NCBI GenBank assembly: GCA_965637545.1
Contig: OZ281495.1
Coordinates: 3,348,001 to 3,412,000 of the forward strand
From: Phallusia mammillata
Lineage: Eukaryota
Length of the DNA stretch: 64,000 nucleotides
Direction of reading: 5' to 3'
Positions 7,443-55,862 of this stretch are shown here, in pieces. Positions within the stretch are counted from its first letter, which is position 1. The number at the start of each line of letters is the position of its first letter. Under the pieces are notes generated by a model. It saw only the letters and a list, made by a program, of their open reading frames with translations, had not been told where the DNA came from and searched no databases. The position numbers and the translations under genes were made by a program.

Positions 7443-8955
7443 ATGACAAGCACAACTGACGTAAGTTACTACTATCTGTTTTTTGACTAAATGCAGAAGA
7501 AAACTAACAAAGCGTGATTATCACATTCACACTAGCCTTATGTTAAGTGCGTTAATTAAAAGTTTCTCGCGCTTGACAATTGTTTGGAGTTAAGGTGATT
7601 TTGCAACATTATTGTTATTCGAGAGACTGCATTTGGTAATATGAGATCAAAATGCAGTTATAGCTGTAAAACATAAGATAGTAGTTGCATTCTACATGTA
7701 AACTGATATTTCGCCCCATCTTTGGAAATCTATCGTGTCAGGATAGTGTTTCTGCCGTGGTTTTAATTTACTATAGTTTGGCCCATGTGGCAAGTAACGC
7801 ACAAAATGTCATCTTTGCTGTTAGTTACGGTTTGTGATTAAACAATTTTGACCACAGCTACCTGAGTTTAAGCCGAAGGACATCATATGCGATCCCGAGA
7901 AGTTCGTCGCTGGGTCGGGTGGTTTCGGAGACGTTGTATATGGCTACCATAAACTGAAGCAAGAGATCGTTGCTATCAAAGTGTTCACTGTAGCCAGTGA
8001 CAAGGATCGAAAACCTTTGGTGAAAAGGTATGCTGTCCTATTTACCACAGAAGAGTGAGTAAGAACTTTACTAGAAAATATACCTCTGATTTTAACAGAA
8101 TATATGAAGAAATGCAGCATTTGGAGAAGGCAAACCATCAAAATATCGTCCGGGTCCTTGGCTATGTTAAGTGGCCTTTTACAATGGGAATTGTGATGGA
8201 ATACTACAAAGGCGGAGACCTTAACAGTCTCCTTTTCAATCGACACATTCCTTTGGGACTTGGCCTGCGTCTTCGAATTTTATCCGAAATATCAAAAGGA
8301 ATTCAGTTCTGCCACAATCTACCTGACAAACGTTTGCTGCATTTAGACTTGAAACCGGGAAACGTTTTTCTCACTCAAGATCTTCATTGCAAAATTGGCG
8401 ACTTCGGTGGGGCAGAGCTGGCAACGTTGACTGGCCAAGCACCCGCAGATTCTTCAGCAAGAAGCACGAAGGAGAAGCCACAATACACGCCCCAGTACAC
8501 AGCTCCCGAAAAACTGCAGAATAAAACAATGAAGCCCAGGAAAGAATTTGACGTTTATTCATTTGCTATTTTGATATACGAAGTCCTCACGCGTGATTCT
8601 GCCTATCCAAGTGTAAATTTAACAGATTTAACAATTGCTATTATAAAAGGAAAAAGACCAGACTGTGGCAAAATACGCAAACTGATGGAAACTTTGAAGA
8701 GCGAAGAGAAGAAAATGGTCTCAGAACTGGAAAACCTGATGAAACGATGCTGGGATCAAAAACCCATCAATCGTCCCAACATGAATGAAGTAACACGCAT
8801 TCTAAATCAATTGCTTGCCAAGCAAAAATCCGCTCATCTACTTTCACAAGCCACAAAAGCTCTAAAGGAAATGGACCTAGATGAACAGTCAACGTTCAAT
8901 GAGGACGAGTGCGTTCAACTTCACCAGTTTTCATCTAGAGCCAGAGCATTTATCG
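7443..8955 (+). CDS. K1: RIPK/TKL-like Ser/Thr protein kinase domain (exons 7443-7460, 7858-8027, 8099-8955)
   Basis: Spliced translation gives MTSTTD|LPEF..GSGGFGDV..VAIK..|..HLDLKPGN..DFG..YTAPE..DVYSF..CW..RP. GT-AG sites keep the frame, and the exon structure matches the three paralogs. Confidence 0.92.
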
Positions 8956-9157
8956 GTAAATTTGAAACGACAGTTTCAATAATGATTCAAAACCATCAAC
9001 AGCAAGGCTGACGATTATTGTCTTTTTTAACTATAAAACAGTGAAACCAATGGACATACATTTCATTGGTTTAAACAGAATCAATCGGTTTTATATGACG
9101 TTAATCCGAAAATACTTTTTCAAGAAAACCGACTTAAAACAACCGTTTTGCTTTTAG

Positions 9158-12100
9158 ACCCATCGACCCTTCAAATTCTCAAACAAACCACCAAACCAGC
9201 AAGAACCGAAGAAAACTGGTCTACTCTAACAACAGACGCCAAGACATTACAGCGAGATTCGGGTAAAGTAGATGAATTCATATTTGCATTTGTGTTCGTT
9301 GTTTGTGTTACAACAAGGAAGTTGGTAAAGAAAAACGTTTTAGTCGCCACCATTCAGTCTTAAATGTACAAACAGCTTTGATTTGAAGCAAACTTACAAT
9401 GAAATTTCGTAGATCCAACGGCAGATCAAAGCATCGAGGATCTTCCACATAAACAGGACAAGAGGCGTTTTACTCTCATTACCACTCCACACGACGGTGC
9501 TTACGTTATTGTTGATTGCTTGTTGTTGGTAATGGCTTACAAAGAAACTTACATATACAGCAGTTATAACCTTGAATCTGAATTGGTGATATAATTTTTC
9601 TTACCAATCACCATCTGTTAACAATAGCTTTAACAGTTTTAGAACTAATTAATAAACGTAACAATGAAAGACTTACACAGTTGAAATATAAACTTTCAGA
9701 TTTGAAAGCTAGATCAACCATAGAAGAGCTTCCGCATACGTCACAGGAAGGTATTTCCCATGAGAATAGTTCCTTTCCAGTACAAGGTAACGTGATTTTA
9801 GATTTTTGATGTTGCATTTTATTAGTGAAATAACAACAATATATTGTTAAGGAAGAACAAACTTCGCCCAGAATCCACAGATGTTTGAAATTGCTAAACA
9901 TCAGACAGAAGCGGTAAAAGAAAGAAAAGGGGCAACACCATTTACATCAGGTAAGCCATGCTCTCAAAAACCCAATGAAAACGAAGTAATGACTTTACTT
10001 AAAAGTGAAATAAACGCAAAATGGTTGCTCTATATATCAACAGTTGCTCGTAGAAATTGCTATCCAATATCGGAAACTAATTTCTAGCTGGTGTAAATGT
10101 TAGTTTTGTTTATCAGCTCGACTTTAGTTTCACCTTTTGACTTTTCACTTTTGTTGAAATTCACGACCCTGTTGATCCTTGTAATCTGATAACGGGTCGG
10201 TTTGCTGTACACGCAATTATTTTATGAGGTTGACAGCCTTGAAACCCGAACAGCTTAATTCTTCATTGAATGCTGTTACATTGCAAAAACTATGTGTCAA
10301 TTTTCAGATTCAACCAAAACGCTTAAAAGCACTGAAAAACCTCCACTTCATGTACACGATAAGCTTCCCGTTAAAACAAAGGCAACTGAAATCCAACACA
10401 AAAGCAAAGAAACTTTTCAACGATCGGCAAATGTTGTTCCGCCCTCAGTGGAGTCAAAACCAGGTAAATGAATCGAGACCTTTATGTGTAGTTTCCGCCC
10501 GCACTGATCAGCCATCATAACTTATAATAAATTTGAACAATGTAATTAATGCTGAGTTAAGCATAATTGGACCAACCCTTCATGCAGACCAGCGATCACG
10601 GCACACTCATATATATATCGTAGGACACCAGGCACACTGAAGCTTTGAAGGCGTTACATCGAATCAAACCGAACTTCCAGCTTTGTCACTTAGCTGGGAC
10701 TAGGCCAGAAGTACCTGCTAGTTGGAATAGGCCAGTACATAGCTAGGAATACGTCAGAAGTACCTGTTAGTTGTTTAATGTCAGTTTCGTAAATTTTGGC
10801 GATTTCTTCATTAAATTATAAAGCTATGTGTTCTTTCACCAAGCGAGATAAACTTAAACTCAATTCAAATACGTTAAATTTTCAGACGTGAACGAAACTT
10901 TCAATGAGAGGCTGAAACAATCAACCAAAGCAGCAATCGACCTGTCAAGAGAGGGGAACCCAGGTACTTATGTGGCAATTCGTACATTGTTTAAAAAGCA
11001 AAAAACCTGCATTATCGATAAATTTGTGTGTTTTGTTAATTGAGCATTAAGTTCGTGTACAGGGACCTTTAATAGACCGTTAACTTAAAACTGTCCCTAA
11101 TAAACGAGAGACTAAAACGACACGCTTCGATGCACATGAACAAGCACAATAGTGATGTATCCACTTTCAATTTTCACATCAACAAAAAACTTTACATGAA
11201 GACCAGCTGATTCAAAACTTTGTTCAATTTGTGAAAGAAAATAAACTTGACGAAGCAAAATCGACGAGACAGGGGCTTTTAAACTCAATCAAAAGTGAGG
11301 TTGAAGTAAAATAAGTCTCTGTTTTTGTTAAAACCATTGTGTATGTACACATTAATGACATTTGCTATTATATAACTGTTCTTTGCTAGTTAAGCCTTCT
11401 TAGTAACGACAAACAATTTGCTAATTAGGTGGTGCAAAACTTAACCCGAAACCACAGACCGGCGAAACGTTGAAACGTCCCCCTAAAACGACAGAAAAAA
11501 GGCAAGACTTGCCTCCTTGGGCATCAGGTATTACCTCGCTTAAGATGCAAATCAAACGTAAATGCCTCATCTTAAAAGTGTCAACTCAACTCAAACTAAT
11601 TGCAACGTTATAGTGTTAGATCATTAAATTAGTTTGAGGGATCTTTTCGCCATAGTGCATTAGAAAATTATAAAACAAATGATATTTTTTAGATTTTACT
11701 GCACGCAAGGTCCCGATAAAACTTCGTTATACGACACAATGGAGTGGTTCTCACGATTCCGACCCCACGGCACCGTCAGGTAATGTGCAGTTACAGTTGT
11801 TTGTTTATTCCTAAATGTTGAGAATAACATTGAACTGTCAAGCCAATAAATGACATGTAGACTGCAGACATTGCACACCACTGTTTCGACCTGTAAGGTC
11901 TCGTCAGTGCAGCTGGTGACAAGAGATCGGTCGTATTGTCTAGTGTAGCCAGGAAGAGACTTTATATGTTGAAATAATGTGCAATTTCAACAATAAAACG
12001 ATAAAATAACAAAATAAATGGGTGCAAATGTTGAGGCAAAAAACGCCTTTGAGCAAACTGCAAGCCACAGAAACATTGAAAACTGCATTTAAACTCTTAG

Positions 12101-15100
12101 ATTTGACACCGAATCAAAAGTCCGACGCGCCTCCAAATACGTCAAGTCAGGGAAATCCCCATGACAGCACTCCAATCCCACATAAAGGTGACATAATTAA
12201 GTTTTTTTTAACGGTGACTGTCAGCAGAAACTTAATACTGACAACACCTTTTTTTCCAGGAAAAAGAACAATTGCCAAGGAAAAAAAATCATTCGATTCG
12301 ACTAAAAATCGGAGCAGTGCGAAAGATGAGAAAAAAGATGCGATCGATTTAACGTCAGGTAAAGTGGTTTGTCCAAAAAAGTGTTCACAGGCCGCATGTG
12401 GTTTAAAACTTCCTGAGTTAAAGCATGATCATAATACAAACCCCAGGTTTTCCTAAAACAATCCAAAATATACAAGCAGTAACACTTTTGGGATCACCAG
12501 CATTAACAAGTAAACATTGCGAGATAATGCAACACGTGCCAATCAAATACAAGCAGCAATCTGATATCGCTATCAAATATTTTTTTTGATATCCCAACTG
12601 AACGTCTGCTTCACCTTATTTAATTTGCGGCTTTGTGAGTTTTGACTTTCATTGTTGTAAATTCCCGGCCATGCTGTCCTTTGTAACCCGACCAGGGATC
12701 GGTTTTCTGTTCACGCCGTTCCCTTCGTAAGGTTGAAAGGTTTAACTTACAAGTCTGAAACAAAAGCGCTGCGTCATTCTTGTTTGCTACATTGTAAAAG
12801 TGTTTTGCACAGTCACCATCGCGTTTTTTCTGTTTTATACACATCTGTTTAATTGGTGGTGTGACATTTATAGATTTAACCAAAACACGTGAAAGCACCA
12901 AAAACCTTACACATACGTCACAACTGGGGATGGCCAAAGACCTAAAGGCTTCAGATTTTCAACGTTTAAGAGACGATCGGGGTTTGACTTCGAAAAGTAA
13001 AGGCGCCATTGATGACGTCACTGTCCAGGGCAAAACCAACGTAACCTCAACACAGATGACGAAAACACTCTTGAAAGAGTCAACACCAGGTCAGTGATAC
13101 TGAAATATAACCTACATTTATCCAGGATTTTTGAACGTGTTATACAGGAAGAACTCTAAATACAAATAAAAATATGGCTTTATTCCTCCCAAAAAGTGAG
13201 TTTTTATAACCCGACTTGTTTATATAAGAGGACCGCGGGCCGGATAAGTTGGTTGGCGGACGTACGTTTCCGACCCATTGGAGTAATGCACGTCAACAAA
13301 AAATACTTTTTGAAATATTATGATCAAATGGTTTTGTATCGATTTCTATACCCAAACGTAAGAGCTCACGCATTGCTTTCTTTCTGTTAACGATTTAGTG
13401 TTTTAAATGGGTGCAAATGTTGAGGTAAACTAGGTCTACGAGCAAGCTGCGTATCTAAAATTTCTCATTGTATCCCAACTTAACGTTGGTTTCACCTTAT
13501 TCAATTTGTGAGTTTTGACTGGCATTGTTGTAAATTTCCAACCGTGTTGTTCCTTGTAACCGACCTGGGATCGGTTTTCTGTACAAACCATCTCGTTGTA
13601 AGGTTGAAAGGTGTAACTTACAAGTCTGGAACAAAACCACTGTGTATTCTGTTTTGCTATTTTGCAAAGATGTTTTGCACAATTAACATCGCGATTCTGA
13701 AATATACATTATGTGTTTGTTGTTTCTTTACACATAGTTGTTTGACATTTGATTTAACATTTATAGATTTAACAGAAACGCGTAAAAGCACCAAAACCTT
13801 TCCACATACGTCACCTCTGGGATTGACCCAAGACCTAAAAGCTCCTGGTTTCCAACGTTTAAGAGACGAACGGGGTTTGACTTCGGAAAGCAAAAGTGCC
13901 ACTGATGACGTCGCAGTTCGAGGCAAAACCAGTATAACCTCAACACAGCCGACGAAGAGACTCCAAAAAGAGTCAACACCGGGTCTGTAATACGGAAATA
14001 TAAAAGTTATCCAGTTGTTTTTAGATAAAGTCCTGTGGTGCGTTCAAATCTAGATGTTGGCTAGATTTTTATATGACATGCTTTGAAGATCGGCTTCATT
14101 TTAATAGCGTATTATGATTTATTATAGAAAAAGCGACGCTACGCGAATTATCGATTTTGTTTGAATGAGAGTTCAAAATCAACTTTGTAAAACTGCAAAA
14201 CTTTTTGATGATCAAGAGATTTTAAACACAAGCCAAAGCTACGATTTACGCCCTGCTTTTATTTGTCCACTTTTTAAATGCGGCAGGCCAAATCCAAGAT
14301 CAGGAAATTAACAATGGATCGCAATGGGTAGTTATTAATAATGCGAAGCCATTTACTGTATATTATCTAAAATTTAAATCAATTTATGAGTACTTGAAAC
14401 ACAGCTAGAATAAAGTTATTTGTATTCACTTGTTATCGACACAAGCGCTGAGACAAAGGACATCATACATGCCTTTCTAACAGGGCTGTATACCGGATGA
14501 TTTTGCTTGTCGGGCGATTTGTGTATTTTGAAATTATATCAAATGGTCACAACGGATTTTCAAAGTATTGCATCAATAAGATTTCTACAAAAGCGTTTGA
14601 GTTTACTCATATATTGCTATAATTCTGTTGAAAGTTTTTGTGTTTTTTGATCCAACCAATATGCTAAAAACAACGCGAAACTTAAATGATATTTTCCAGA
14701 AATAAATGCACGTAAAGTCATCGGAGTGCTTCCAGTTACGTCACAGCAGAAGTCTTCACACATTAGTTTTGACGTCAGTTTCACTCCAGAAAAAGGTGAC
14801 ATGACTTCTGATTTTATTAATTTTTAACAGTGGGCTAAATTCAAAACAAAAACAAACTTTTCAGAGAGGAGAAAAGTCGTCGTGAAACAAAAAACAATGA
14901 ATACGATGAAAAATCGCACGAAAGCAATGACAGAGAAAAAAGATGCGATCGCTTTTAGACTAGGTAAGTCCTAGCTAGATTACATAAGGAACTTGGCAAG
15001 GGACAAACAAAGTTGTCACTCAAATAAAAACTTTTTACCGTGAAACAGCTTTTTCTTGATTGTTGGCTATTTGCAAAAGGTAGGTATATTTTCTTAAATA

Positions 15101-17860
15101 GGCAAGAATATTTCTGAAGCCTGCAAGGTTTGACATTCCAAAAGAATGCTCAAGACACAAAGTTCGCCCCAAAACGCGGGTGATCAGTTGGGTTGCAAAT
15201 CTTGATCCGAAGTTTAGCTGAAAGCTACTTGCAAACCACTTAAAAAGCACCGGCGTATAACTAGAGAACCGCTGATCCTAACGAACACTGACTTTTCAGA
15301 TTTAACGTCAAATAAAGCGTCCAAGGAGCTTCCATCCACGTCACAGAGAGCAGTTTCCGGTGATACATCTCGAAATCCACCTCAAGGTGACATATATTTT
15401 TTTCTTTGTTCCTGGCTGCTGACAAAAAAAAACTTAAATTAGGCGTCGCAAACCAATCCGCCCCAAAGAAAAATTATTTGACTCGCAGTCACTTTACAGG
15501 CTACTCTCTTGTACATGAAATAACACAAAAGCTATTTCGTGTTTCTGTGTGCCCATGGTACAGCTTTCGTGAAGAACAATTAAGATCTAAGTTAGAAGAT
15601 TATTAAAGTATTCCTACAAACGTTTTAACAACAATAATAACAGTGAAGGGAATAAAAATTACAATTAGTACGGTCCACTAAAAACTCTACTATTCCATTG
15701 CTTTGGTCCAGGGTTTAGACAAATTTGTCGAGCTTTGCTCTTAATCAACATTGTCCAGATAAAAGAAAATTCGTCATAGAACAAAAGGTAACGGATACGA
15801 CCAAAAATCGAACAAAAGCGATGGAGAAGAAAAAAGAAACAGCTGCGTTTTCATCAGGTACACCATAATCTGATTTCAGAACAGAACAATTTAAAAACGA
15901 AATAACAACAACGATCGACTGTATATTGAAAGTACGTTGCATTGTAGTAACTGCAATATGTACTCGTTTTGTGTAAATTCAAGTATGATTACTTTTTACC
16001 ACCTTAAACAGTGACATTTTTCACATTTAATATGATATCACAAAGTAAAGGTTTTTTGCTCAGTCATCTTATCAATTTGAATATCGCTATCCAACGTATA
16101 TTTTTTTACGGATCAGACATAACTACAAAAAGCACCGAAGAGCTTCCACATACGTCACGACAGGAGATTTCTCATGACGGAAAGGCTCCAGGTATCCACC
16201 TAAAAATACGATTTTGGGCAAAATGTTACATGTTTCAAAACATGCATCGGGGAAAGTCGATCCATATTCAAAGGAGCTAGAGACCGGTTCCAGGTCTCAA
16301 AGGCAAATATCTAAAACGCCACAGAGTTGTAAGTGGATCTGCAATTGGGCCGGAAACCCTATCCGAACGCAATCAAAGTGTTATAATACTGTATCGAATA
16401 GGCTAGGGTTCAAAGCGAAAACAGAATATTCTACTGTTTTGCTAAAAAAATTCGGCCGAATTTATCAAAACATTGCGACGTCACGCGAAGTCGTACTCTA
16501 CGTTTTTGACATGAAACATAAGATTTACCACCAGCCAAACAGTGATGTTACTATAGTATACTAACTTGGTAGTCCAGCTCCTCTTTTCCTCCCGTTTCTT
16601 TTGTTATCCTGCTTATTTTGGTTCATATGACTGACACTGCACGTCGCCTGAAGTTTTGTGCGATGTGGTAAACAAAGCCGACACATCATTAAATAAAACG
16701 TAAACAAGCGTAATATTTTCTTTAGTCTGACTTGCTCATACACTAGCTTGTTTTTCAAACACAATTTCTTTAAGATGAGAACAAATGTCCACGTGAAGAG
16801 AAGTTGATACAGAAATTTCTTGAACATGACGAAGCAAAATCGACAATACTGGAACTTACGAAGCTGCTCAAAAGTGAGTTTGTTAAAAAACGATAAGTCA
16901 GTGTGCAAATTTTATCTGTAGGCTAATTACATTTTACGTTAGTTCTAGCCGGCCAACATTTGTTCTAGAATAACAGGATAGTTTGTGAAAAAAACTATTT
17001 TGGCCAAAATGATACGCAATTCCGAAACATGAATCCGAGAAAGTCGATCAACATTCAAATGATCTAAACACCGGTACGGTGCCCACAAGGAGTTGTAGAC
17101 CTGCCATTAGGGCCCGAAACCCGATCCGATCCGAACCTGACCTTGAATATTAAATCTATTAAATTAAATCAAGCCCGAAAGTCGGTGAAAATTCAGCAAA
17201 AATGATGCTAAGTGTGGAGTCAGGTCCGAATCAAGCCCGAGTATAAAAACTTAGCCCGAACCCGAATTTCAACTCCGGTGCACTAACAACCTGCAACTGG
17301 TAAAAAACATCACAAAGTGTAATTAAGATATTTGCTGTTTAGATCAAAGTGGGATTTGTAAAACTAGAGTGCACCAAATCGGCTAAATAGAGTTCTAACA
17401 GGAACCGAATATTCGACAGTTTTGCCAAATAAATTCGGCCGAATCAATTGAAACAACGTCACGCGAAGTCGACGACGTCACGCGAAAGTCGTACGCTACG
17501 TATTTGAAATGAAACATAAGTTTTACCACCGTGCAAACAATTGTGTAACACAACAGAATAGTTGTATTTTATTATCATTACAGTTCTGTGGATGTAAGGT
17601 TGCCTCTGTCATGGTTGTCAGCCTGGTAATGAGTTACTGATTTTGACTGTGGGCAAAATGATATTGTTTAATAATGATACTCGTTTTTACACTGTTAATT
17701 TTTGTGCAATTTAAATAATTCTGGAGTGAAAAGTTAGCCTCAAAAAACATTTTGTTTTAAGATGAGAACAAATGTCCACGTGAAGAGAAGTTGATTCAAA
17801 AATTCCTTGAACATGACGAAGCAAAATCAACAATACTGGAACTTACGAAGCTGCTCAAAA
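9158..17860 (+). CDS. K1 linker: 19 candidate phase 1-1 cassette exons (about 690 aa, S/T/K/P-rich and helical repeats)
   Basis: Exons 9158-9262, 9413-9496, 9700-9786, 9852-9950, 10308-10463, 10886-10963, 11429-11527, 11693-11779, 12101-12187, 12260-12358, 12874-13089, 13767-13982, 14700-14795, 14865-14963, 15300-15386, 15759-15857, 16117-16191, 16775-16873 and 17762-17860. Each is AG/GT-bounded, a multiple of 3 long and stop-free. Confidence 0.75.
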
Positions 17861-18454
17861 GTGAGTTTGTTAAAAAACGATTAGCATAACATGCCAAAAT
17901 AACACGATAGTTTCGTATTTTTAACATGTTACTTGCGTTATCCGCGGTGTATTAAGCTGTACAGGCCTAAAAAAATACGCGTTTTTTACTATCTAACGCT
18001 TTAAAAACAGTCATTTTTGTACTTTTATACTTTTTCGAACACCAGTTTCGTATATTAGCTGGGCATTAACATGAAAATATAAAGCTCAGATCAGATTGTG
18101 CAACTGCTTGGCCGAGCGCCGAGCATCAAAACAACGATGCTCGGTACCGAGTACAGGGGTCTGGCTCGGTTCGGTCCATCACTAGTGTACGGAGAACGCC
18201 TATATGCGTTATACTCACAGTTAGTCTACCATCGAGCTTCCTGTTATATTGCAAGTCAGATTAATTATTTTTTTATTCGACTTTTACGGCTTGCAGTGAT
18301 TTGGTGAGCTTATTAGTTCTACTCGGGTACCACAGGGTTGGAGCAATGTCACTCAAGATATTTGCTCAGGGAAACACAAGCGATCGAAATAGGATTAGAA
18401 CACACAAACTTAATAAAAATAGACCGAGTGGTGGGCGCGGTCTTGTGCTTAAGT

Positions 18455-18577
18455 CAGAGTTGTAAATCGGACCTTTCAGGCCTTAACTGTCTTCTCACAA
18501 ACGATTCGGGTTCAGGCCGGGTTTGGGGCTTGTACTTTCGGGTACGGGATCCAATTTCAGGCTCGTTTACAACTCTG
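18455..18577. mobile_element. Small MITE-like element
   Basis: 12-bp TIR cagagttgtaaa / tttacaactctg and a ttcggg-rich interior. Related degenerate sequences lie near 16.3 and 17.1-17.3 kb. No TSD. Confidence 0.5.
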
Positions 18578-18722
18578 GCGAGAAACTGAAGCAGTATTGC
18601 TCTACAACATTGTGGAACCTGTTGAGTAGAGAGAAATGAATCAAATATAACTGATTCAACAGGCTTGCAATAAAATGAGAAGCTTAAGACACAATATTGA
18701 CGCAGTAATTTTGTTTTTTAAG

Positions 18723-21677
18723 GTCAACGCAATTACACTGCAGAGGATATGAGAGCAATCGCCAAAAAGCACGTGAAAGACCAAGAATATTGCAAAGCAC
18801 TGTTGTTCTTTGCAATCGCAAGAAATTTTTACGGAGAACATCAGATTCAGAAAGAGGAAGGCAATCAGGCATCAAGTGTCCAAGATCACAATGTAAAGTT
18901 TCATACACCACCACCTGCAGCCAGTGTAAAGGTTTCTACACATTTGGAAGAAAAAGTTTCGTGTTCCTCTCGCTCAACTCGGTCAAAAGTAACATCTCAA
19001 CAGGTTTGTGCCTATCCATCGCCCTTGTTTTGCTTTTAAAACAATGATTTCCAACCAATTTTGAAAATTCTTCACTTCACAAAAAATAATTTCATTCCTA
19101 CCCAATAGACTGCATAGCTGATGTTACACCATAGCAAGATAAAATTAGGCCTTTTATCAACTTCACAGGTTATATTCCCAGAGCTATAATGTCTATTTAC
19201 AAACCACATGTAGATAAAATAAATGCCTCCCTGAAGTTTAAAAATATGCCCCCTTGAGACGAATTCATACCCGGTTAGGAACCACTGCAAAATGTATTTG
19301 ATTGGTGGTACCATACATAAACACACACTGCATCTCTTTTCGGCAACGTTTACTCAAAATTTTTTTATGGTGCACTTTTATGCTGTGATGCAGTTTGGTT
19401 GAAGAGTGCCGAAATTTGAGTAATATTACTGTTTTCAACTTTTGTTATCCTTTTGCATGCAGAGATATTTCGTTCACATCGATTCACAACGCGTGGGTGC
19501 GAAAGGTGGAACGCTAAGAGCGGGTTGCTGTCAAGTTAAAATCCCTAAAGGTGCTTGTGATGATGAGGTGGAAATTGTAATCACTTCACAATATGGATCC
19601 TCAAACGGAAAGGTCTTCACCTAAAACTAGAATTTATGTTAAAAAACAACAGACACAATTGGTTTATGTTTAGTTTTTTATTTGGCCAAGAAAAAGTACA
19701 GGGCTAGATTTGAATTGGGTGGCTAAACATATGTTGTATAACCGTGGGAAAGGTAATGAAGAGTAGAGTAAAATACGTTACTACAGCGAGGCAAAGAGGT
19801 TATTGCAGATAATGTTACATGTTAGCGTGATAAATGTTTGTACATGTGTGAAAAAACGCGATTTCCAATAAGAAAATTAAAAGGAAAGGATCAGTTTGTT
19901 CAAAAAGCTCTCGCGAACCTCACATTTACTATTTCTTGTCATGTTATGAGCTTGTTTAGATTTTTTTTTTTTCATGGGTCCCCATTACTGGCTAATTCAT
20001 AGTCTATGTGTCCGTAATTCTTAAACTGTGTGTCGTAACACAAAAAGAACAACTGGGGATCAAGGGTGGCAAAACATCTAGTTTCTCGATGAACCCCATG
20101 ATCAAAATAGGAAAAACACAGTGGTATATACGTACTATCTCTAATCACTAAACTTTAATGTTTAATAATTTTATTATTTAAGGTTTCGGCGTTAAACATT
20201 GAGAATGATTTTGTTGCCCGACTCACTCCGATTTTGAAATGTGAACCAGTAGGTTTCAAGTTTAGGAAACCAATAGAAATCACACTCCCTACATGTTACC
20301 GGAATGTCAAAGAATTTCCTGTTTCTGTCGCAGTAAGTGCTGAAAACGACAGTCAAGGACAAGCACAGCTTTGTGTTTTGTATATTTCTACCAAATTATG
20401 TCTCTGCTGCTTAGGTTATTGGTGGAGCTATTAACGTGAGAACTTAATATCTAATGTATACGGAATTTTGTGATTTTAGTTTTTACTTTTACAGCTCCAC
20501 CGATTTAAATATTTATTTTTTAATTCAAGCACACGAGTAATAACTAAAACAAGTGCTGTTTACCAGTAAAAATATCATACGCTGCTGTTTATACTCACCT
20601 GTGATTCGGTAAATACTTTAAATTAGCTTAAAAGGTATTTCTTAAACCAACTTATAACCCATGACAGGTCTGCCTCCAAAAGTTTCAAAACGGTGTGCGT
20701 TTCCTGTTAACATATCGTTCTATAGCTATCAACCATGTATTGCGCAGATTTGTGACAAAACCAACAGTTCTACCTGGAAGGTTATGACGCAATGCCTAAT
20801 GGACCAAACAACTCAATCATTCACCTTCCAAACTGACCACTTTAGCATGTATGTTCTCATACTGTTATGTTTATGCATTCTAGTAATTATTTCAAATTCC
20901 AAAATTATTGTTCAAAGCTTTGACGGAATCTGCACTGCTGGCGATTTTGTCGATTTAATGAAAGAGACAGCAATCACCTTGGAAGTTTCTTCTTATGAGG
21001 AAGACATCGTATCCGAAATTGTGACTCATGTGTTTGTTTGTGACAACATTGAGTCAACGAAAAATGAGAAGCCCCTTAATTCAGCTTTGGATATGATCGT
21101 GCTACTGCGGTTAGTTCTAAGGTTAAAAACTGTGTTGTTTTGTTGAAACATGTTTTCCAGCAGCCTAAATAATTCTGAATAACAAGTTCTGACAAATATG
21201 GCTTTGCATCATTGCGGTAGCATTTATAGTGGACTGACGTTACCAAATAAATATTACGCAAAAAATGCCAAGCAAAATTTCATAAAATAAAAAAAACAGG
21301 TAAAATAAATCACGCATACTATGGTTTGTAATTCCCAAAACATGCACTTCCATAGACGGCTATGTATTGGTTTATTTATATTTTTGTAAGTTTGTACATG
21401 CAAAATCACCGGTCTTATGTAAGTAAAACCCAATACAGAAACCAAAAACAAGATGTCCACATCCGAGTAAGTGCTGAAAACACAGTAGCAAACCCTGATG
21501 AACATATTGCTACACTGGAGAGCATCAGAGATTCGTGGCAGTTTTGCCTGACAAGGACGGACGGCGAAAACTGGAAACAAGGGATAAAGGAGATTAAACT
21601 GGAGATCAGTTTTAACAATCCTAATCTACGGGATATCGTCAAGTCTGTTTTCTTGGAGAAACGTCACTTGGGCATCA
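18723..21677 (+). CDS. TPR-like helix + ZU5 + UPA-like module, copy 1
   Basis: Exons 18723-19003, 19463-19612, 20183-20332, 20748-20848, 20918-21109 and 21439-21677 splice in frame. ZU5 signatures are VGAKGGTL, VKIPKGA, LTPILKCEPVGFKFRKPIEITLP and W..FQTDHFS. A beta-rich UPA-like segment follows (ITLEV..HVFVCDNIES..WQFCLTR). Confidence 0.82.
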
Positions 21678-23190
21678 GTAAAAGTTTTTGCTTGTTAGGG
21701 GTCCCGTTTCCGTGACACATATTGTTTTTGTCCGTATTTTTTTCTTTTTTCTGTCCAACGCTGGTTTGTTATACGCGTTTGGTCAAGAAAGCGTGCTTTA
21801 AATTTATTCAAATTTACACAGATGTTAATTATTTATCCATATTTATTCCTCTTAAAGTTTGACCCAAAATGATCCAAGGGTTCAACAACAGGTCCCCAAA
21901 ACGTAATTTCTTTAAAACAGCTGTACTGACCTAAGTACATGATCTAGGAGTTTCATGCTTTGTTGGTTGGTGCAATGTAAGCTATTCTAAATATTCTAAC
22001 TTTTTATTGGATTTGCCCATTTTGCACCCCTTTAACCCCGAAATAATTGGCTTCACTTTTTCCAGTCCCTTAGGTCAGAAATGCAAGCCCGTTATATGTG
22101 CTAAAAGTTAAATTTTTAGGAAAAAAATGTTTGCAGTGGGTTACTCATTTGGTGATCAAAATTTCGGCCCAATGGCCTAATGGTTGTCGTTACAGCCCAT
22201 AATATGTGTACACTGGAAAGCCCAAGGGAGTAATTCACTGGTTTACAATTGCGGCAAATTAATGCATAGCGGGAAATCGCAACTGGACGCGTGGACGGAC
22301 GTTTTAAGCGGCAGTCTTTTTGATTAGTAGACATCAGCGCAGTAATGCTATGTGGTTTTATTACGTTAGTACGCGTATTTTCAGCTTAGGCCAAAGTTTT
22401 GTATCTTAGAAGTGATTAAAACGATATTTAGGTTTTGTACATTTCAGGCAAACGTTGTTGATTAACATGAAGGTAAAAACCTACATGTTTTCTAAAGATC
22501 CAATAAAAAGGATTAAACGGTAATTGACAAGTTGGCCGTCTTATGACGACTGAAGGTCAACTTGTAGGAAACGCAGAACACAGTTGAGAATGATTTTTTG
22601 TCACAACGTAGCTTCTTTAATTTTTACACATATACTCCAGAAACAATACGTAAGTCAAATATAGATTGAGAGAAACATTATTGTTAATCACTAAGGACTG
22701 TGTGCTATTTAAAACCATGTCAAAAGATTTTTAAACGGTCGTTCGGCGACTACACCGCAATAGGCTACTGAAGAACAATAAATTTATGTGACAATAATGA
22801 TGCAAAAAGAATACGGACATGCAAAAAGAATACTTTGGGTTAGTGCTTTCTAATAATTTGTCCTTAAGAATTTTAAAAATAACCGCAAGATTTTCTTTCC
22901 GTAAATCCGCACAAACACTCGTGTGGGGACCCATTCGTTTTTGTTTGCAAAAACAATCATATTTGTAAATCAAATGATGTGTATATTAAATTGGTGAATA
23001 TGATATAGAATATATAAAATGAAAGTATATTAGAAAGCCACCTTTCTAACTTCATCCGTATTGCATTCGAAACAAGCCCTTTATGCTAAATATCTACGTG
23101 CACTAATAAACCATTGTACAACTGATAAACACATACAACAATACAGTTTAAGTGTTTCACGGCTGTTTTTATCAATTTTTGTATCTTCAG

Positions 23191-26100
23191 GTAAATATAA
23201 TAATATAAGCCTGAATGAGACGATTCAAAATTTTATTAATTTTCTAACAAGGAAATATGACGAAGCAAAAGCAGTTGATCAGGAACTATTTGAATTTCTC
23301 AAAAGTAAGTTTACGTTCGATCTGAGGTACAATTTAGAACCTTTTTTTTGACCAAATTCTGTTAACATAGCAATGCTGTTGCATTTCCACAATGCTAACT
23401 GTTCACAATAACTTTAAGTAATAACTACTTTTTTTAGAAACAAAGATACTAATAACGACAACCAGAACATATTATTAGTGAACGCAAAGAAAACAACTAT
23501 TTGCATACTCACTTACTTTCAGATGAAAACAAACGTTTACTTGAAGACCAGCTGATTCAGAAATACCATAACAGTTTAAAAGAAAAAAACTATGAAGAAG
23601 CGGCATTGATAAGACAGAAATTCACAAAGCTACTCAAAAGTGAGTTTACAAGAAAAGAAATAATACAACATGTTGTGGGTTGTCTTTAACCGCCTTGTAT
23701 TTACACGGTTGTAGGGTCTAATCCTGTCTTAACCGCATTGCGTTCCGTAGAGCAAGAAACTTAAGACAGCAAACACATTGTTAGCATTCAAAGTTGCCCC
23801 TCAACTGAGGATAAAAACGAAGTAAACAAACCGTTCCCCTAAGTCATTTAAAACTGTTTATTGTAACGATTTATTTAGTTGGAAGTCAGTTAAAGTTATT
23901 TTAGTTAAAGTGCAATGATTTATATGTGACTGTGCAGATCTGGATGTAAGATCGACACGATAATTTTGTTTTGCAAGGTCAACGCAAATTTACTGCAGCT
24001 GATATAAGGGAAATCGGCAAAACGCACATGGATCAACGGGAATATCGCAAAGCACTGCTGTTCTTCAAAATTGCTAGTAATTTTAACGCTGAACAACAGA
24101 TTCAGAAAAAGGAAGGCAATGACGTATCAAGTATCCAAGATCGCAATGTAAAGTCTCATACACAACCACCTGCAACCAGTGTAAAAGTTTCTACACATTT
24201 GGAAGAAATAGTTTCAGTTTTCTTTCGCTCAACTGGGTCAAAAGTAACATCTCAACAGGTCGGTATTTACACGCAAACCTGTGGATTGGTTAACTTGTGG
24301 ATAATTATCCCCGAAGGGGTGACATTTCAGGGGGTAGTTACATAGAAAAAAACCTTTCTTTTACTTTATCCTTATGTGACGTGATCATTGGTTATTTTTT
24401 TGATGAAATGGTGAATAAAACTCAATTTGTTGTTCTATTAGCAGGGGTAATAACAATTAAAACAACTGCTTTAAAAGTTATACAAAATGTAAAGTGGCTT
24501 TTTTATTATATTGGTTGTACCATGTGAAAACATGCACATACACTGTAGCTCTCTACAGCAACGTTACCTATTCACAACTGCAGCATTTTCGTGTACCTCT
24601 ATGCTTTGGCGGTTGAAAGCGTTGAGATAAGTTTTCAACCGATTTTATCTTGTTCAAACAGAACTATATCTTTCACACCGATTCGCAACGCGTGGGTGTG
24701 AAAGGAGGAACGCTAAGAGCGGGTTGCTGTCAAGTTAAAATTCCCCAAGGTGCTTGTGATGATGAGGTGCAAATTGTAATCACTTCCGAGTATGGATCCA
24801 CAAACGGAAAGGTCTTAAAACTAAACTTTTAAATAACAATCAGTCGCATCATTCTAACTTAAAAAAAATTATAAGTATATAATTTGTATGAACTATATAA
24901 AAGTATGTGTATAAACTATATTTTGTAACGTAAAGTTTTCAAAAACTTACTACTCAACCCTACACCACTTTAGGTTGTAAATTAATAATTCGGCTCTTTG
25001 TGTCACCTATCCAAATTTAGCTCAATGTGAAGCTGCAGTGAGGTATGGTGTTAGTAGCTCTACCCAATATAAAGCCGAGAAATATCCGAGTTCATGTCCC
25101 ATTTCATGTTTTAAGACTTACAACAAAATGTGTATGTGCATGACACCAAAGAAAGTCTCGTCCATCGTATTAGAGTAACAAATTAATTTCAAAACACTTT
25201 TAAGCAAGCCCTGGGTAGGGAATAAATGTTTAATTTCTATGGCCACAAGCTTAACAAGTTTAAAAACCACAGCTCTATGTTGCATCTATGGTTTGTAAGT
25301 CCTCAAAGAAAAATAATTGTATTTTTTTAAGACTTCGTTATTCGGCGTTGACAATCCCATCGTTGACCGACTCACTCCGATGTTGAAATGTGAGCCAGAA
25401 GGTTTCAAGTTTCGGAAACCTATAGAAATCACACTCCCTACCTGCTACCGGAATGTCGAAGCATCTCCTGTTGCCGTAAAAGTAAGTTAACTTGTTATTG
25501 AGTGATTGAGTTTTGTTTGTCCTGGCAAGGCATTTTTAACTATTTTCACAAACTGTTATAATAATCATAATTGAACTCATAAACAACTTATTCAAGTTGT
25601 CTTCCTATTTCGCCAAGATTCGCCACAAAACAAACGATTCCGACTGGGAAGTTCTGACACAATGCTTGATGGACCAAACCACCCGATCATTCACCTTCAA
25701 AACCGACCACTTTAGCATGTATGGCATTACACACTGTTCAGTATAATACAAAAAGGTTTACATTACCAATTGAAACAATTTGTATATAGCTATGACGTTG
25801 TCGGAAAGTTTTTTGGTCTGATGAAAGAGACGGCAATCATCCTGGCAGTTTCTCCTTGCGAGGAAGACATCGTATCTGAAATCATCGCACATGTGTTTAT
25901 TTGTGACAACATTGAGTCAGCAAAAGATGTGACGCCGCTTAACCTGGTTTTTGACAAGATTATTCTGTTGGGGTTAGTACTTAAACAAAAACTGTGTTTT
26001 GTTAAAACGTATTTAGCATTAGCCTGTAATACGTAGTCTGGTGAGGGTCTTTTCGTTGTTAATGGTAAAATATTTGAAGATGAAGTATTTAAAATTAGCC

Positions 26101-26525
26101 TACAATCACCGACCACAGCAACCCAAGATGTTATTATGAAGCACAAATCAACATCTCTTGCATTATACTGCATGGATACCGCCGTCTAGTGGTCACTCCC
26201 TCATTTATATGAAAGAATTTGGTTTGAATCGAAACTTTAACTAAACTTATCCAAATACATAGATCATTTTCTTTGTAATTTTCTAAATACAGAAACCAAA
26301 GACAAGATGTTCAAATCCAAGTTAGTGCTGGAAACGCGGTAGCAAACCCTGATGAACATATTGCTATACTGGGGGGCATCAGAGATTCCTGGCAGTTTCG
26401 CCTGAAAAGGACGGACGGCGAAAACTGGAAACACGGATTTAAGGAGATTAAACTAGAGATCAGGTTTAAGAATCTAAATCTACAGGATATCGTCAAGTCT
26501 GTTTTCTTAGAAAAACGTCACTTAA
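23191..26525 (+). CDS. Helical hairpins + TPR-like helix + ZU5 + UPA-like module, copy 2
   Basis: Exons 23191-23304, 23523-23639, 23978-24258, 24662-24811, 25332-25481, 25618-25718, 25790-25972 and 26293-26525. Sizes and phases match copy 1 (281/150/150/101). Motifs VGVKGGTL, LTPMLKCEPEGFKFRKPIEITLP and FKTDHFS. Confidence 0.82.
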
Positions 26526-26901
26526 GTGAGTAAAAGTCTTTGCTTGTTTTAAAAACTGTGAACTTGTCCAGTTAAAAGTCGGCATTACGAAAACATTGCA
26601 CAATTTTACAAAACGCAACACATCTCAGTTTGTTGTTACTGATATATCGTTGTAACTCGTGTTGTCTTAATTCACAAAATAAAGTTTGTATATCACACTT
26701 TAAAGCATCTCGACCAGCACATTAGTATTTTTCCAGCCTTCATTAAAACATCATTTTGTTTCGTTTTTAATTTGCTAAGTTGATGTTTAACTTGACTTGT
26801 GTCTTGGGTATCCCCTCTAGTTTGCAGCAGAAAATTACCGATGCATTCGTAAGTTTTTGATAAGTTTATGCCAATGTAACAAACTTCAATTTCTATCTTA
26901 G

Positions 26902-27106
26902 CTCCAACTGGACCGAATCAATTAACATACATCGATGCGAGAGGCGGTTCGGTAAATTTTTAGAAGAAATGGTCTCCACGAAACGATATTCCATGATGGC
27001 GGAATTTCGAAATACGTTTGCAATTGCGGCTTCTTTCAACCAACTACGAACTATTGTTGCTACTCATATTCCCCTAACGCACGCTGCACTCAACAAAGCA
27101 TTTTAA
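26902..27106 (+). CDS. Probable terminal exon of K1 (reading frame ambiguous)
   Basis: Acceptor ctatcttag at 26901. A direct phase-1 splice from 26525 gives TPTGPNQLTYIDARGGSVNF* (stop at 26963). Splicing through a small exon at 26821-26848 gives a 67-codon frame ending at 27106. Confidence 0.45.
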
Positions 27107-41196: not shown

Positions 41197-44100
41197 ATGG
41201 CTTCGATAAACGAAGTAAGTAAACTAAAAATGTACAAGCTTAAAGGCATGCAGAATTTTTTTTGAACGTTGCATTGCTTTTAAAAAAAAACTGTTGCCCA
41301 TTTAAGTTTATGTTTTCGAAACATGTAAAAGTGCAAATGCCTTATTTGTTTCTGAAACAGTTTCAAGAATTGGACTGTGGTGACATCACGTGCAACCTTA
41401 ATGACTTTGTGGCGGGTTCAGGAGGTTTCGGGGATGTTCTATTTGGATATCATAATGGGTTAAAGCAAGAAGTTGCCATAAAAATATTTAAGGTCTCTGG
41501 TGGAAAGCAGGAAAAGGCGCGGCTTGAAAAAACGTAAGTTATGAGACTTTTCATTTTCGGTACCTTAATGTATTGCAAACATGGTAGGGATGTACTTTAA
41601 AATGATGGGTTGGTACTTTAACTTTGTGGAAGAATTTTGTGACGATGACATCACAACAGTTTATAAAAATAATGACGTTACGAAGCGCAAATAACTTTTA
41701 AAAATGATCATTTTAAAAACTCTTTCCAATTTTGAATTTTGTGTCAACTTGCTGGCGCAGTGTGTGTTGATGTGTATTGAGAAAGGAGTCTTTGCGAATA
41801 ACCGAAGATTACAAAAGCGACGTATGGGGCCTGTGTGATGTTTGATAAATTGTACTCGTTGTTATTTCGTTAAAACAAACCTATTACGGTTAGAAGTCCC
41901 CAATCACATTTGAAGGAACATACCACCTCACATGTCCTTACCGGACTTCGCTCGTGGTCCCATACACAGTACATCAACATGCAGTTGAGTAAAAAACCTA
42001 TTTCCTTAGAATCAAAGAAGAGATGGAACACTTGCAGAAAGCCGGCCATGAAAATGTTGTTCGGGTTTATGGCTATGTCAAATGGACTTTCGCAATAGGA
42101 ATTGTGATGGAATATTACAAAGGCGGGAATCTCAAAGAACTACTTCAGGATACATCCAAAGAACTGGGCCTTGCTCTGCGCCTTCGCATTTTATACGAAG
42201 TAGCATCAGCAATGGATTTCTGTCACAATTTACCAGACAAACGTTTAATTCATCAGGACTTGAAACCTGAAAATGTCATGTTTACTGAAGAGCTTCGTTG
42301 CAAAATAATCGATTTCGGTGCCGCCGAACTGGCCACTTACAGTATTTCGGCAACTGTAAACCCTTTGGCAAGAAGCAAGAAGGAAAGGCCACAGTATACT
42401 CCCTATTACACTGCTCCAGAAAAACTTAAGGACCCAATTATGAAACCAAGAAAGCAGCATGACGTGTACGCTTTCAGCATGTTAACTTACTGGCTTCTTG
42501 CTCGTAAAGCTCCCTATCCACATCTGATCGGCGAACCACTAAGAAAGCTTTTGCAGCTAATCGAGAACGGAAAAAGACCAGACTGCCAGGAAATACAGGA
42601 TTGGATACAAACTTTGGTCGGTGAAGACAGAGAAATCGCAGAGCAACTCCAACTACTGATGAAGCGATGCTGGGATCAAGATCCCACAAAACGTCCCACA
42701 ATGACTGAGATAAAAGAAGAATTAAAAACGCGTTTGGATAAGCAACAAAACACCAAGCTACTTTCTCAAGTTTTGACGACTTTGACTCAAATAAATTTGG
42801 ACGAGCAACCGCAAGTCAGCGAAGGTCGACGCGTTCCTCTTCACTATTTTTCACCGCGGTCCGGAGGTTTTCATGGTAAATTAATCGGTCATACATATAA
42901 ATTTATTATAATAAGAAGTAACTCCGAGCAGAAGCAAATTTCCTTGCCCGAGACGCTTTGGAACTGGTAGTTATCACAATTAAGTTGGGACACAATGTGA
43001 TAATTTGATGTGTTATATTTTATCGCTGTTCAGAATTTACACAATAACATAAAAAATCGAAAGATATTAAGTCGTTATGTCATGTCACCCATCTATATTT
43101 CAGTGCCCTTCACATCGGGTGGAACCGAAGGACGTTTGATCGAACCAGCGGAGGGCGCACAAGAGTATCCTTCTTCTCAGCAAGAGAAAAAATCCCCCCA
43201 AGGTGAAAAAACAAAACCGGGTAGGATTTAACAATGTCAAATTTTTTGGTATATAACCTTCAGCATCCCCGTACTTGACCCAGGTTGACATGCTCAGTTT
43301 ATGAAGCCACTTGACAACCCTCAAATGCCGCATTAACAATTTTGTGTAATGTAATCCCAAGGTTTAGGTCTTACAACGGCAAAACTATATAGAGCGCACT
43401 TTTAGAGCTAAGTGGCCGCAGGTCTCCCATTTCCGACCTGGTCAATCAAAACTATTTTTCATTGATTAAACTTTGTTTTATTTGTCGTAACATTGCTGTT
43501 TGTTCGATCGTTTTTTAAAACTTATGAGATTTAAAGTTCAATATAAAGCCGTAACCGCCCTCTGCGAGTTTGTTGTAAGTCAATATTTGTCTTTGGCAAC
43601 CGAAACGTCAAACAATTTCACTCGGTGCACAGACGATGTTTCTAATAAATCTTGGTTGTATTTCTCTCGGAAAGCAATGCAAATGTATTCACTAAATAAA
43701 GATATCTAAAAGCAATCAACTTTCAGGTCCCTCTACACCAAGTGCGGCCATAAAAAAGACAATCAAATCTACAGAGGGCACACATGAGGTACGGTCTCCA
43801 TCTTCTTCTTCACAACAAGGGGAAAGTCCTACATTCAGCAAACCGCAGCAACCAGGTATATGGTGGGCAAAACGATAATGGAAATTCCGATAATTTAGAA
43901 CATCGTTATAAATTTACCAGTTTTTGTTTTACCTACTTTAAGTCGCGGAACACTTGGCGCATATTAAAATCAAGGTCACACTCAACCAATTGATAACGGA
44001 CCCACGCAATTACATTATCAATATTTCACGACGAATCTGATTGTTACACAAAAATAAATGTGAATCACGATGAAGCATTCAAACTGGTGACAGCGGAGAA

Positions 44101-46420: not shown

Positions 46421-46620
46421 NNNNNNNNNNNNNNNNNNNNNNNNNNNNNNNNNNNNNNNNNNNNNNNNNNNNNNNNNNNNNNNNNNNNNNNNNNNNNNNN
46501 NNNNNNNNNNNNNNNNNNNNNNNNNNNNNNNNNNNNNNNNNNNNNNNNNNNNNNNNNNNNNNNNNNNNNNNNNNNNNNNNNNNNNNNNNNNNNNNNNNNN
46601 NNNNNNNNNNNNNNNNNNNN
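46421..46620. other. Assembly gap (200 N)
   Basis: Run of N; the true gap size is unknown. Confidence 1.
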
Positions 46621-53000: not shown

Positions 53001-54400
53001 GAAACGAAAAACCTGCTCGAAAACAAGATCAATTGTTGTTGCGTTGAAACTTGGCCTTGAGTCAAACCGAGCAACTTAAATATGGAAAGTGTGGTTTGTG
53101 AAACTTCATGGCTGTATGTTGGGCTTTAAGGAAGTTCCTCAATGATAAGTATAAACGTTGCAATATCCAACATACATTGGTTATAAAAGAGACAAATATT
53201 ATGTCCGAGTATAGACGTCACCACACCAATAAACATGACAGCACGTTTAATCCATCTTGGATGCGTTGATAATACACTTAGGTCTAAGCTGGTCAGCTGG
53301 GTTTGTGTGGTTAATATTGCCAAACACACGACGAAATTGTTCAAATACCAAACGCCTTCAGAATGATATTTATATCTGCAAAGCATATTCCATCATCAGA
53401 ACGGCAGCATTAACCACGGAAAGTACCTCAAGCACACAAAGCAACGTTTCCAAAATTTTGGGGCAACGTGTAAGTCGAAAACAAAAGTCTATCGGCAGAT
53501 TTAAATGATACAGAACTAAAGGCTTAAGTTAGGCGCGGAGGCATAAATAGGCTTTTAGTCGAGTCTCGTCAGGTCGCTTTGCAGCAATAAAGCCGGTGGG
53601 TTGGGGTAAAATGCCACTGAGGCGTGACGGGAAACCAATGTCGTCTCACAACGATCGAAACTTGCCTAGACCGCCGCGTTCTTAGTTGTCACCAGACCGT
53701 ACAAGGTTAGGGGCTGAAGACAAAACATTATTCCGGTAAAATAAACGACAAAAAGCACGAAAAACGAACACAACAAACGATTGTGGTTGCGTTGAAACTT
53801 GGCCTTGTGTCTTAAACTAAACGACTTAAATTTCGAATATGTAAGGAGTGATTTGTAAAACAACATTATGACAACACTATGTTGTGCTGCTGTGAAAATA
53901 GAAACTGTATTAGTGATGAAATCATGAGTTGCTTCAAATTATTTTTTAAACACGCGTTTAAACAAACATCTTATGTATTTCTTATTTTAGAGTGTGAACT
54001 GCAGCATTTACCAACTTTGCCACGTACGTTTATTAGGCTCTGCTACGTAAAGTGTCCCAAGCATGCAAAGCAACGTTTCTCATATAGGGCTAGCAAATAA
54101 TTTTTGTTCAAAACTAAAGGTGAAAAATAGGTGTCTAGGCATAAATAAGCTTTCAGTCGAGGCTTGCCACGACACTTTGCAGCAATAAAGCTGGTTGGTT
54201 GGAGTAGAACGGCACTGAGGCGTGACAGGGAACCAACATTGGGGCTCAACTATGATCACAACGGTCGAAACGCATTTGTTTAATTGGCGCATTTGTATGT
54301 ATGAATCTGAGTGATTCTGTGGTGCTGGCTGCTGCAAACACAACTCAACATTTGTGAATCGGTGATATTTATACCCAAACCTTAATTATTCGCTCTGCGG
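50100..54400 (+). pseudogene. Gene X relic, copy 3 (inverted relative to copy 2), truncated at the Penelope-like insertion
   Basis: Reverse complement of segments of 33.8-40.5 kb. Exon-like units at 50387-50446, about 52.53-52.60 kb, 53559-53630 and 54157-54228. Confidence 0.55.
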
Positions 54401-54419
54401 AAACACGCTCCACAGGTTA

Positions 54420-55800: not shown

Positions 55801-55862
55801 ACCACCACCTTGGCAGTAATGTTTATGTTTAAATTACTTTTCAAGCCCGTGTATAGTGTTCC

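Follow-up and report, generated by a model that had tools for sequence, protein, structure and literature searches.

A candidate gene joining a RIPK-like kinase to two tandem ZU5-UPA modules in the ascidian Phallusia mammillata

The window analysed here is a 64,000-nucleotide (nt) stretch of the Phallusia mammillata genome (assembly GCA_965637545.1, contig OZ281495.1, positions 3,348,001 to 3,412,000 of the forward strand), which consists of AT-rich eukaryotic DNA with short exons (GC 0.32-0.46); all positions below are counted from its first letter. Its first 27 kb hold, on the + strand and in this order, the exons of a protein kinase, a long array of small exons and two tandem copies of a module that combines a ZU5 domain with a probable UPA domain. 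The kinase, the array and the modules can be joined through 36 GT-AG exons into a stop-free frame of 5,535 nt (1,844 codons), running from the ATG at 7443 to a TAA (Table 1). On gene-structure arguments, we assign a probability of roughly 0.55 to the reading that these parts constitute one gene of ~19 kb, which would be expressed as a single mRNA and would encode a cytosolic protein of ~1,844 residues. An earlier note on this DNA had proposed a self-cleaving, PIDD-like fusion of such a kinase with two ZU5-UPA modules, and several of its elements are retained here whilst others are revised.

The predicted chain begins with an apparently active Ser/Thr kinase (residues 1-348). In a profile scan, Pfam Pkinase (PF00069) matches positions 8001-9008 with 129 bits (E value 2.8e-37), and the translation contains the GSGGFG, VAIK, HLDLKPGN, DFG and APE motifs of the protein kinase superfamily. 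A sequence search of solved structures in the PDB returned RIPK4 as the best match (E 2.2e-27; 99 bits vs 72 bits for TAK1), then RIPK2, RIPK1 and RIPK3, with TAK1, RAF and JAK behind; the top 29 distinct PDB sequences all belong to these four RIPKs (E 2e-27 to 5e-22), TAK1 coming next at 4e-19. A word search covering proteins of up to 588 residues gave environmental open reading frames (ORFs) as its top matches (39% identity) and, amongst named proteins, ANKK1 and RIPK3 as the best (28-35% identity); no ZU5-UPA was found on the contigs that hold the environmental matches (L001-L003). The catalytic loop HLDLKPxN of RIPK4 and ANKK1 is the same as that of the kinase described here. By similarity search the domain is thus closest to the RIPKs among TKL kinases, in agreement with the earlier note, and the label ‘RIPK-type’ is justified for the kinase domain only. 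The partner regions typical of the RIP kinase family were not found beside it: no RHIM core ([IV]Q[IVLC]G) occurs in any open + strand frame of the locus, and no Pfam match to a death domain, CARD or ankyrin repeats was obtained in the exons of the locus or in the ORFs downstream.

Repeat analysis revealed two copies of a series of seven blocks, one at 17.8-21.7 kb and the other at 23.5-26.5 kb, which share 77-89% nucleotide identity (62-86% for the short H exon). The intronic DNA between these blocks is not conserved, while the splice sites are conserved in both copies. Each module consists of seven exons in the order H-A-B-C-D-E-F, and the module blocks, of 1212 and 1215 nt, are in phase 1 on both entry and exit. 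The two modules share ~70% protein identity, with all splice sites intact and a synonymous divergence (dS) of 0.38, a non-synonymous divergence (dN) of 0.17 and a dN/dS ratio of 0.44; the copies are old enough for selection to show, and both are constrained by purifying selection. The proposed gene clearly illustrates how domains accrete when symmetric phase-1 exon blocks are duplicated in frame. A further H-type phase-1 exon lies between the modules (23191-23304), such that two H exons precede each exon A (16775 and 17762; 23191 and 23523), and the duplicated block was probably H-H-A-B-C-D-E-F originally. Exon A has no Pfam match. Its first 40 residues (exon read from 18725-19003 and 23980-24258) resemble a single TPR-like helical hairpin, a weak lead with an atlas feature score of 0.87.

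Taken singly, exon C1 falls just below the Pfam ZU5 (PF00791) cut-off of 21 bits, with a score of 20.8 (E 4.6e-4), and a profile that includes window exons (profile A2) matches the structure of the ZO-1 ZU5 domain (2kxs; E 7.6e-6). When the D-E region was searched exhaustively with HMMER against 1.84 billion cluster representatives, only two proteins were found, both of P. mammillata. The first, A0A6F9DHZ1 (603 aa; hereafter P0074), comprises ZU5-UPA followed by a Cys/His-rich tail, and the second, A0A6F9DN69 (521 aa, named NLRC3-like; hereafter P0075), is arranged LRR-ZU5-UPA. Both align to both window modules with 52-54% identity over 268-310 residues (E 1e-78 to 1e-102), score 35.5 (P0074) and 34.3 (P0075) bits on Pfam ZU5, and match the exon joins of the window modules without a gap at every junction, which validates the splice model from exon B to exon F. 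On these sequence matches, the region encoded by exons B to D is a ZU5 domain.

The part that follows is probably a UPA domain, as judged from fold comparisons made with the relative P0074. The ESM Atlas model of P0074 residues 50-335 gives template modelling (TM) scores of 0.65-0.77 over 256-273 residues to the ZU5-UPA clusters of UNC5, UNC5CL and SH3BP4/MACC1, and the nearest atlas feature clusters of P0074 are labelled UPA, ZU5 and FIIND. The two ZU5-UPA modules of the earlier note are upheld on this basis, with the UPA half remaining at the level of probable. Profile and sequence searches of this half were negative: Pfam UPA, UPA_2, UPA-FIIND and FIIND gave nothing at E <= 0.1 in P0074 and P0075 and nothing at E <= 1 in the window ORFs holding D1, E1 and F1; a PDB sequence search with the D-E piece alone gave no match; and a word search with P0074 residues 50-335 returned P0074 itself only. 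AlphaFold applied to a 12-row module alignment produced a poor model (predicted local distance difference test score, pLDDT, of 54), for which the Foldseek top three, at low TM, were ankyrin ZU5-ZU5, AnkB ZU5-ZU5-UPA-death domain and UNC5b (3g5b). Matches from VIA-align were discarded as evidence for UPA since, for this part, they reflect a generic beta-sandwich only.

Both modules carry TDHFS at the junction of exons D and E, exactly where the earlier note had placed it. The motif, which is of the (H/S)-F-S form, is located at the last ZU5 residues, just before the first UPA strand, and thus at the ZU5/UPA boundary. In both copies exon D ends in AT/gtatg and exon E starts with C, giving an Ile codon that is split in phase 2 by the intron after the HFS Ser. 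The HFS motif is also kept in P0074, and it is lost in P0075, where RFG replaces it. In PIDD, Nup98, NLRP1 and CARD8, the Ser of the (H/S)FS motif attacks the preceding Phe-Ser bond, with the Phe anchoring a strained loop at the end of the ZU5 domain (PMC3210808). Each ZU5-UPA unit is probably autoproteolytic, as are PIDD, UNC5CL and the FIIND of NLRP1/CARD8, with the cut falling between the Phe and Ser of HFS, and self-cleavage is predicted for both modules from the motif. A cut at both sites would yield residues 1-1254 (kinase, linker and ZU5-1), 1255-1702 (UPA-1, helical unit and ZU5-2) and 1703-1844 (UPA-2), and these three pieces would stay together without a covalent link. The 69-nt intron after the first HFS motif (20849-20917) is in frame and stop-free, such that its retention would insert 23 mostly hydrophobic residues after the cleavage Ser; its 71-nt counterpart in module 2 is out of frame, so the openness of the former is probably a coincidence.

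Between the kinase and the first exon A, an array of 19 cassette exons spanning 9158 to 17860 (+) encodes ~680 residues rich in K, T and S, the last cassette being the H exon of module 1. This array was built by duplication of exon types of 87 and 99 nt, together with helical H exons. Two results indicate that the cassettes are coding. With fixed splice-score thresholds, 13 distinct candidates were found in phase 1 of the + strand vs 2-5 in the other phases, on the opposite strand and in two control regions. Paralogous cassettes, which share 40-65% of their nucleotides, have stayed open and unchanged in length, and non-synonymous differences per site are fewer than synonymous ones (pN < pS) in 12 of 13 pairs. 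In the explanation we favour, the 680-residue linker is disordered.

Evidence linking the kinase and linker to the two modules comes from the exon structure of the locus. The H exons, at 11202, 16775 and 17762 (before A1) and at 23191-23304 and 23523-23639 (between F1 and A2), are open, have strong splice sites and contain no in-frame ATG; they therefore need to be spliced to upstream exons, and the nearest phase-1 donors are those of the array and of F1. Exon F1 keeps its phase-1 donor, and reading through it unspliced adds 17 unconserved codons. F2 differs by 2 nt, which brings a TAA into frame two codons later, provided that the last exon is not spliced further, and the frame consequently closes 2 codons past the conserved end of UPA-2. 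A poly(A) signal follows this stop (Table 1), while the nearest AATAAA lies ~640 nt past the read-through stop of the kinase exon and ~700 nt past that of F1. The earlier note had taken the gene to 27106; we do not favour that end, which needs an out-of-phase donor (GA/gtaaaa, phase 2). An alternative in phase 1, with the donor at 26525 and an acceptor at ~26902, would add ~20 residues and is a candidate only. A conserved tail was sought after F2, and no similarity to the tails of P0074 or P0075 was found; nor were any Pfam domains found in the + strand ORFs from 26.8 to 37.5 kb, or any death-fold exon after F2.

A number of observations weigh against the single-gene reading. The phase compatibility of the exons from the kinase to the second UPA, on which the earlier note had relied, does hold in that the 36-exon frame is free of stops, but it is weaker evidence than implied there, because almost every exon is phase 1-1 and compatibility is nearly automatic. 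No protein with a kinase and this module was found by HMMER among the cluster representatives, and P0074 and P0075, with their other front ends, indicate that the module can occur without a kinase. The window contains three paralogous kinases without ZU5-UPA after them. No word of the kinase or of the modules was found in RNA-like runs of the species, the matches of two run searches being DNA runs only, and when two DNA and two RNA-like runs were mapped on 8900-14899, the RNA-like runs touched intronic high-copy repeats only. The last UPA is not followed by a C-terminal effector domain, which leaves a release model of the FIIND type without its usual payload. Finally, in the DNA runs, which differ from the window at ~1.1% of sites, the cassettes are as variant-rich as the introns (with 26% of the bases, they account for 13 of the 40 listed variants); these 13 are mostly non-synonymous (~10 vs 3 synonymous), and two deletion alleles occur in the same runs, of which one (11140-11297) removes the whole cassette 11202-11294 and another (12093-12168) removes the acceptor of 12101-12187.

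Several of these observations would be explained if the locus held two or three neighbouring genes, namely a kinase gene with some or all of the cassettes as its tail, alongside one or two independent ZU5-UPA genes that begin with a first exon not recognised here or receive a trans-spliced leader, in which case no fusion protein would be made. We regard this as unlikely, though deserving of serious consideration. Neither of the module's two database relatives has a kinase, P0074 having its own Met ~55 residues before ZU5; the other kinases of the window end in short S/T/P-rich tails; and no transcript joins the kinase and module parts. An in-frame ATG is present in each of A1 and A2, but at differing positions, so that these are not conserved as starts. 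Separate genes also fit poorly with the open, phase 1-1 H exons that precede A1 and A2 and have no ATG in frame, with the lack of a nearby poly(A) signal where the kinase exon and F1 would end if read through, and with the retention in F1 of a phase-1 donor that F2 does not need.

A different possibility is that there is a single gene, the modules and many cassettes of which are used alternatively, to give isoforms with module 1, module 2 or a variable linker and a two-unit protein that is rare or absent. Alternative splicing commonly acts on exon blocks duplicated in tandem, and as the linker and module blocks are all symmetric phase 1-1, any of them could be skipped in frame; moreover, the presence of cassettes differs between haplotypes. 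No observation points directly to exclusive use, however; the H exons between the modules look like joining exons, and the read-through of F1 gives unconserved codons with no poly(A) signal close by. We regard such predominantly alternative use as improbable. The least probable of the alternatives considered, in our estimation, is a decaying or silent locus, in which duplicated exons are open through recency and no functional protein is expressed. It would account for the lack of expression in the RNA-like runs and for a cassette polymorphism that looks near-neutral and extends to deletion in some haplotypes. Against it, none of the 36 exons contains a stop or departs from canonical splice sites, and the module copies, although not of recent origin (dS 0.38), have kept a dN/dS of 0.44 and HFS in both; in addition, the small indels of the other haplotype fall in introns in five of five cases. 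For the single-gene reading, the cassette variants and deletion alleles imply a linker that is loosely constrained and a cassette number that is variable between haplotypes.

Two further observations concern the array. A DNA-run contig over 12749-13580 ‘goes back 832’, which suggests copy-number variation of an 893-nt tandem unit. The intronic high-copy repeats touched by the RNA-like contigs, at 10500-10900 and 11700-12100, have a contig depth in the DNA runs 100-300 times that of their surroundings and are probably fragments of transposable elements.

Elsewhere in the window, the three additional RIPK-like kinase genes (Table 1) are 72-79% identical among themselves and share 52% identity with the kinase at 8.1-9.0 kb. 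They have a common phase-1 donor context, followed by short S/T/P/Q-rich exons that they share with one another and by no ZU5-UPA. An assembly gap separates two of these genes, which are convergent, and long ORFs on the + strand have translations that appear to resemble reverse transcriptase of the non-LTR retrotransposon type.

Table 1. Positions of the features of the locus and of other features in the window.
Feature	Positions	Strand	Remarks
Putative first coding exon	7443-7460	+	ATG, 6 codons, donor GTAAGT, phase 0; read from sequence, would fit the phase-0 acceptor at 7858
Kinase exon 2	7858-8027	+	N-lobe with G-loop GSGGFG and VAIK lysine; Pfam Pkinase 7852-8055, E 4.6e-4; phase-2 donor
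Kinase exon 3	8099-8955	+	HLDLKPGN, DFG, APE and C-terminal extension; Pfam Pkinase E 2.8e-37; phase-1 donor ATCG/gtaaat
Symmetric phase-1 cassette exons (19), part 1	9158-9262, 9700-9786, 9852-9950, 10308-10463, 10886-10963, 11202-11294, 11495-11557, 11693-11779, 12101-12187, 12260-12358	+	
Symmetric phase-1 cassette exons (19), part 2	12874-13089, 13767-13982, 14700-14795, 14865-14963, 15300-15386, 15759-15857, 16117-16191, 16775-16873, 17762-17860	+	
Module 1	17762-17860 (H), 18723-19003 (A1), 19463-19612 (B1), 20183-20332 (C1), 20748-20848 (D1), 20918-21109 (E1), 21439-21677 (F1)	+	
Exon A1	18723-19003	+	Helical, possibly TPR-like pre-ZU5 region; in phase 1, out phase 0
ZU5 domain 1 (B1, C1, D1)	19463-20848	+	Three exons; Pfam ZU5, homologue identity, ungapped exon joins
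HFS motif 1	20838-20846	+	Predicted scissile bond Phe-Ser; Ser at about residue 1255
UPA-like domain 1 (E1, F1)	20918-21677	+	Phase-1 donor ATCA/gtaaaa
Helical H-type phase-1 cassettes between the modules (2)	23191-23304, 23523-23639	+	Neither with an in-frame ATG; homologous to H exons 11202, 16775 and 17762
Module 2	23523-23639 (H), 23978-24258 (A2), 24662-24811 (B2), 25332-25481 (C2), 25618-25718 (D2), 25790-25972 (E2), 26293-26525 (block part of F2)	+	
Exon A2	23978-24258	+	Counterpart of A1 in module 2
ZU5 domain 2 (B2, C2, D2)	24662-25718	+	Repeat copy, homologue alignment
HFS motif 2	25708-25716	+	Ser at about residue 1703
UPA-like domain 2 (E2, F2)	25790-26533	+	E2 25790-25972, F2 26293-26533; ends ...EKRHLSE, TAA 26531-26533
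AATAAA poly(A) signal	26678-26683	+	145 nt after the stop
RIPK-like kinase gene	41244-42967	+	
Assembly gap	46421-46620		200 N
RIPK-like kinase gene	47391-48634	-	
Long ORFs	54386-57519	+	Putative reverse transcriptase
RIPK-like kinase gene	62027-62944	+	

The PIDDosome and the inflammasomes of NLRP1 and CARD8 all centre on ZU5-UPA self-cleavage, and in every characterised case known to us the released piece bears a death-fold domain. Since no such domain follows the last UPA of the single gene proposed here, the kinase is its only evident output. The ZU5-UPA units would serve as switches for its assembly or release, as part of innate-immune or cell-death signalling. A more specific model, which we consider doubtful, proposes that two self-cleavages of the FIIND type hold the RIPK-like kinase in a three-chain complex, and that the kinase would be set free or activated once one chain is damaged or degraded, as when a pathogen protease cleaves within the disordered linker of 680 residues. 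If correct, this would constitute a ‘functional degradation’ with a kinase, and not a CARD or death domain, as its output. In broader terms, a ZU5-UPA switch would have been wired, in a close relative of vertebrates, to a RIP-type kinase without any death-fold domain. The occurrence of the same module behind other front ends in P0074 and P0075 fits a lineage-specific family of modular sensors, which is open to experiment.

Amongst known systems, PIDD1, which autoprocesses at two HFS sites, one of them at Ser446, resembles the predicted protein in that a single chain has two ZU5 domains that each end in an HFS motif, with three successive fragments predicted. In addition, HFS follows the Pfam/SMART ZU5 core by ~28-30 residues, as in PIDD1 (PIDD1 ZU5 coordinates from PMC9573974). 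However, PIDD1 is arranged LRR-ZU5-ZU5-UPA-death domain, whereas the locus has an N-terminal kinase, no LRR or Death match and one UPA for each ZU5, and Pfam Peptidase_S68 was not detected in its exons or in P0074 and P0075. The PIDD-like layout of the earlier note is therefore replaced by two complete ZU5-UPA units, which are FIIND-like. In common with the FIIND of NLRP1 and CARD8, where cleavage at SF/S is followed by a CARD, ZU5 and UPA are contiguous and the motif sits on the loop before the first UPA strand (PMC3210808); the language-model features of P0074 have FIIND clusters as neighbours (score 0.91) and, as in CARD8, a long disordered region is predicted N-terminal to ZU5. The locus differs from NLRP1/CARD8-type sensors in its HFS in place of SFS, in its two tandem units, in having no CARD or other death-fold payload after UPA and in that Pfam FIIND and UPA-FIIND were not detected. 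Its likeness in action to PIDD and the FIIND sensors would lie chiefly in the cleavage module. UNC5CL has an HFS motif. The ZU5-UPA-death domain proteins UNC5CL and UNC5 also give the closest fold matches, the P0074 module having a TM of 0.77 to the UNC5CL cluster and of 0.70-0.75 to UNC5, and UNC5b (3g5b) appearing in the Foldseek top three; unlike these proteins, the locus encodes no membrane anchor and no death domain.

The likeness to vertebrate RIPK1-5, of which RIPK4 and ANKK1 are closest, is confined to the kinase domain (28-35% identity), as the locus is without a RHIM core, death domain, CARD or ankyrin repeats. The earlier note named no characterised protein with this architecture, and no database protein with the same layout was found by HMMER; the combination of a kinase with ZU5 is, however, not wholly new, there being a precedent in an amphioxus gene model. 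This RIP-kinase homologue, XP_035662392.1, is an LRR-ZU5-kinase model of 1,250 aa (PMC9573974, Table 3). Compared by its table description, it likewise places a RIPK-like kinase and ZU5 in one predicted chordate protein, but in reversed order, with LRR and ZU5 first and the kinase last, and with one ZU5, the table giving no status for UPA or HFS. Closer to hand, P0074 and P0075 belong to the same ZU5-UPA subfamily as the window modules, and neither has a kinase, the former carrying its Cys/His-rich tail and the latter its LRR and RFG. We found no paper on ZU5 proteins in ascidians, while fusions of ZU5 or FIIND to many domains have been noted in marine invertebrates (PMC8195603). The locus probably exemplifies lineage-specific domain shuffling, in which the ZU5-UPA self-cleavage module has been combined with a RIP-like kinase, and, in the explanation we favour, the gene belongs to a lineage-specific expansion that has attached this module to different front ends (LRR, kinase or none).

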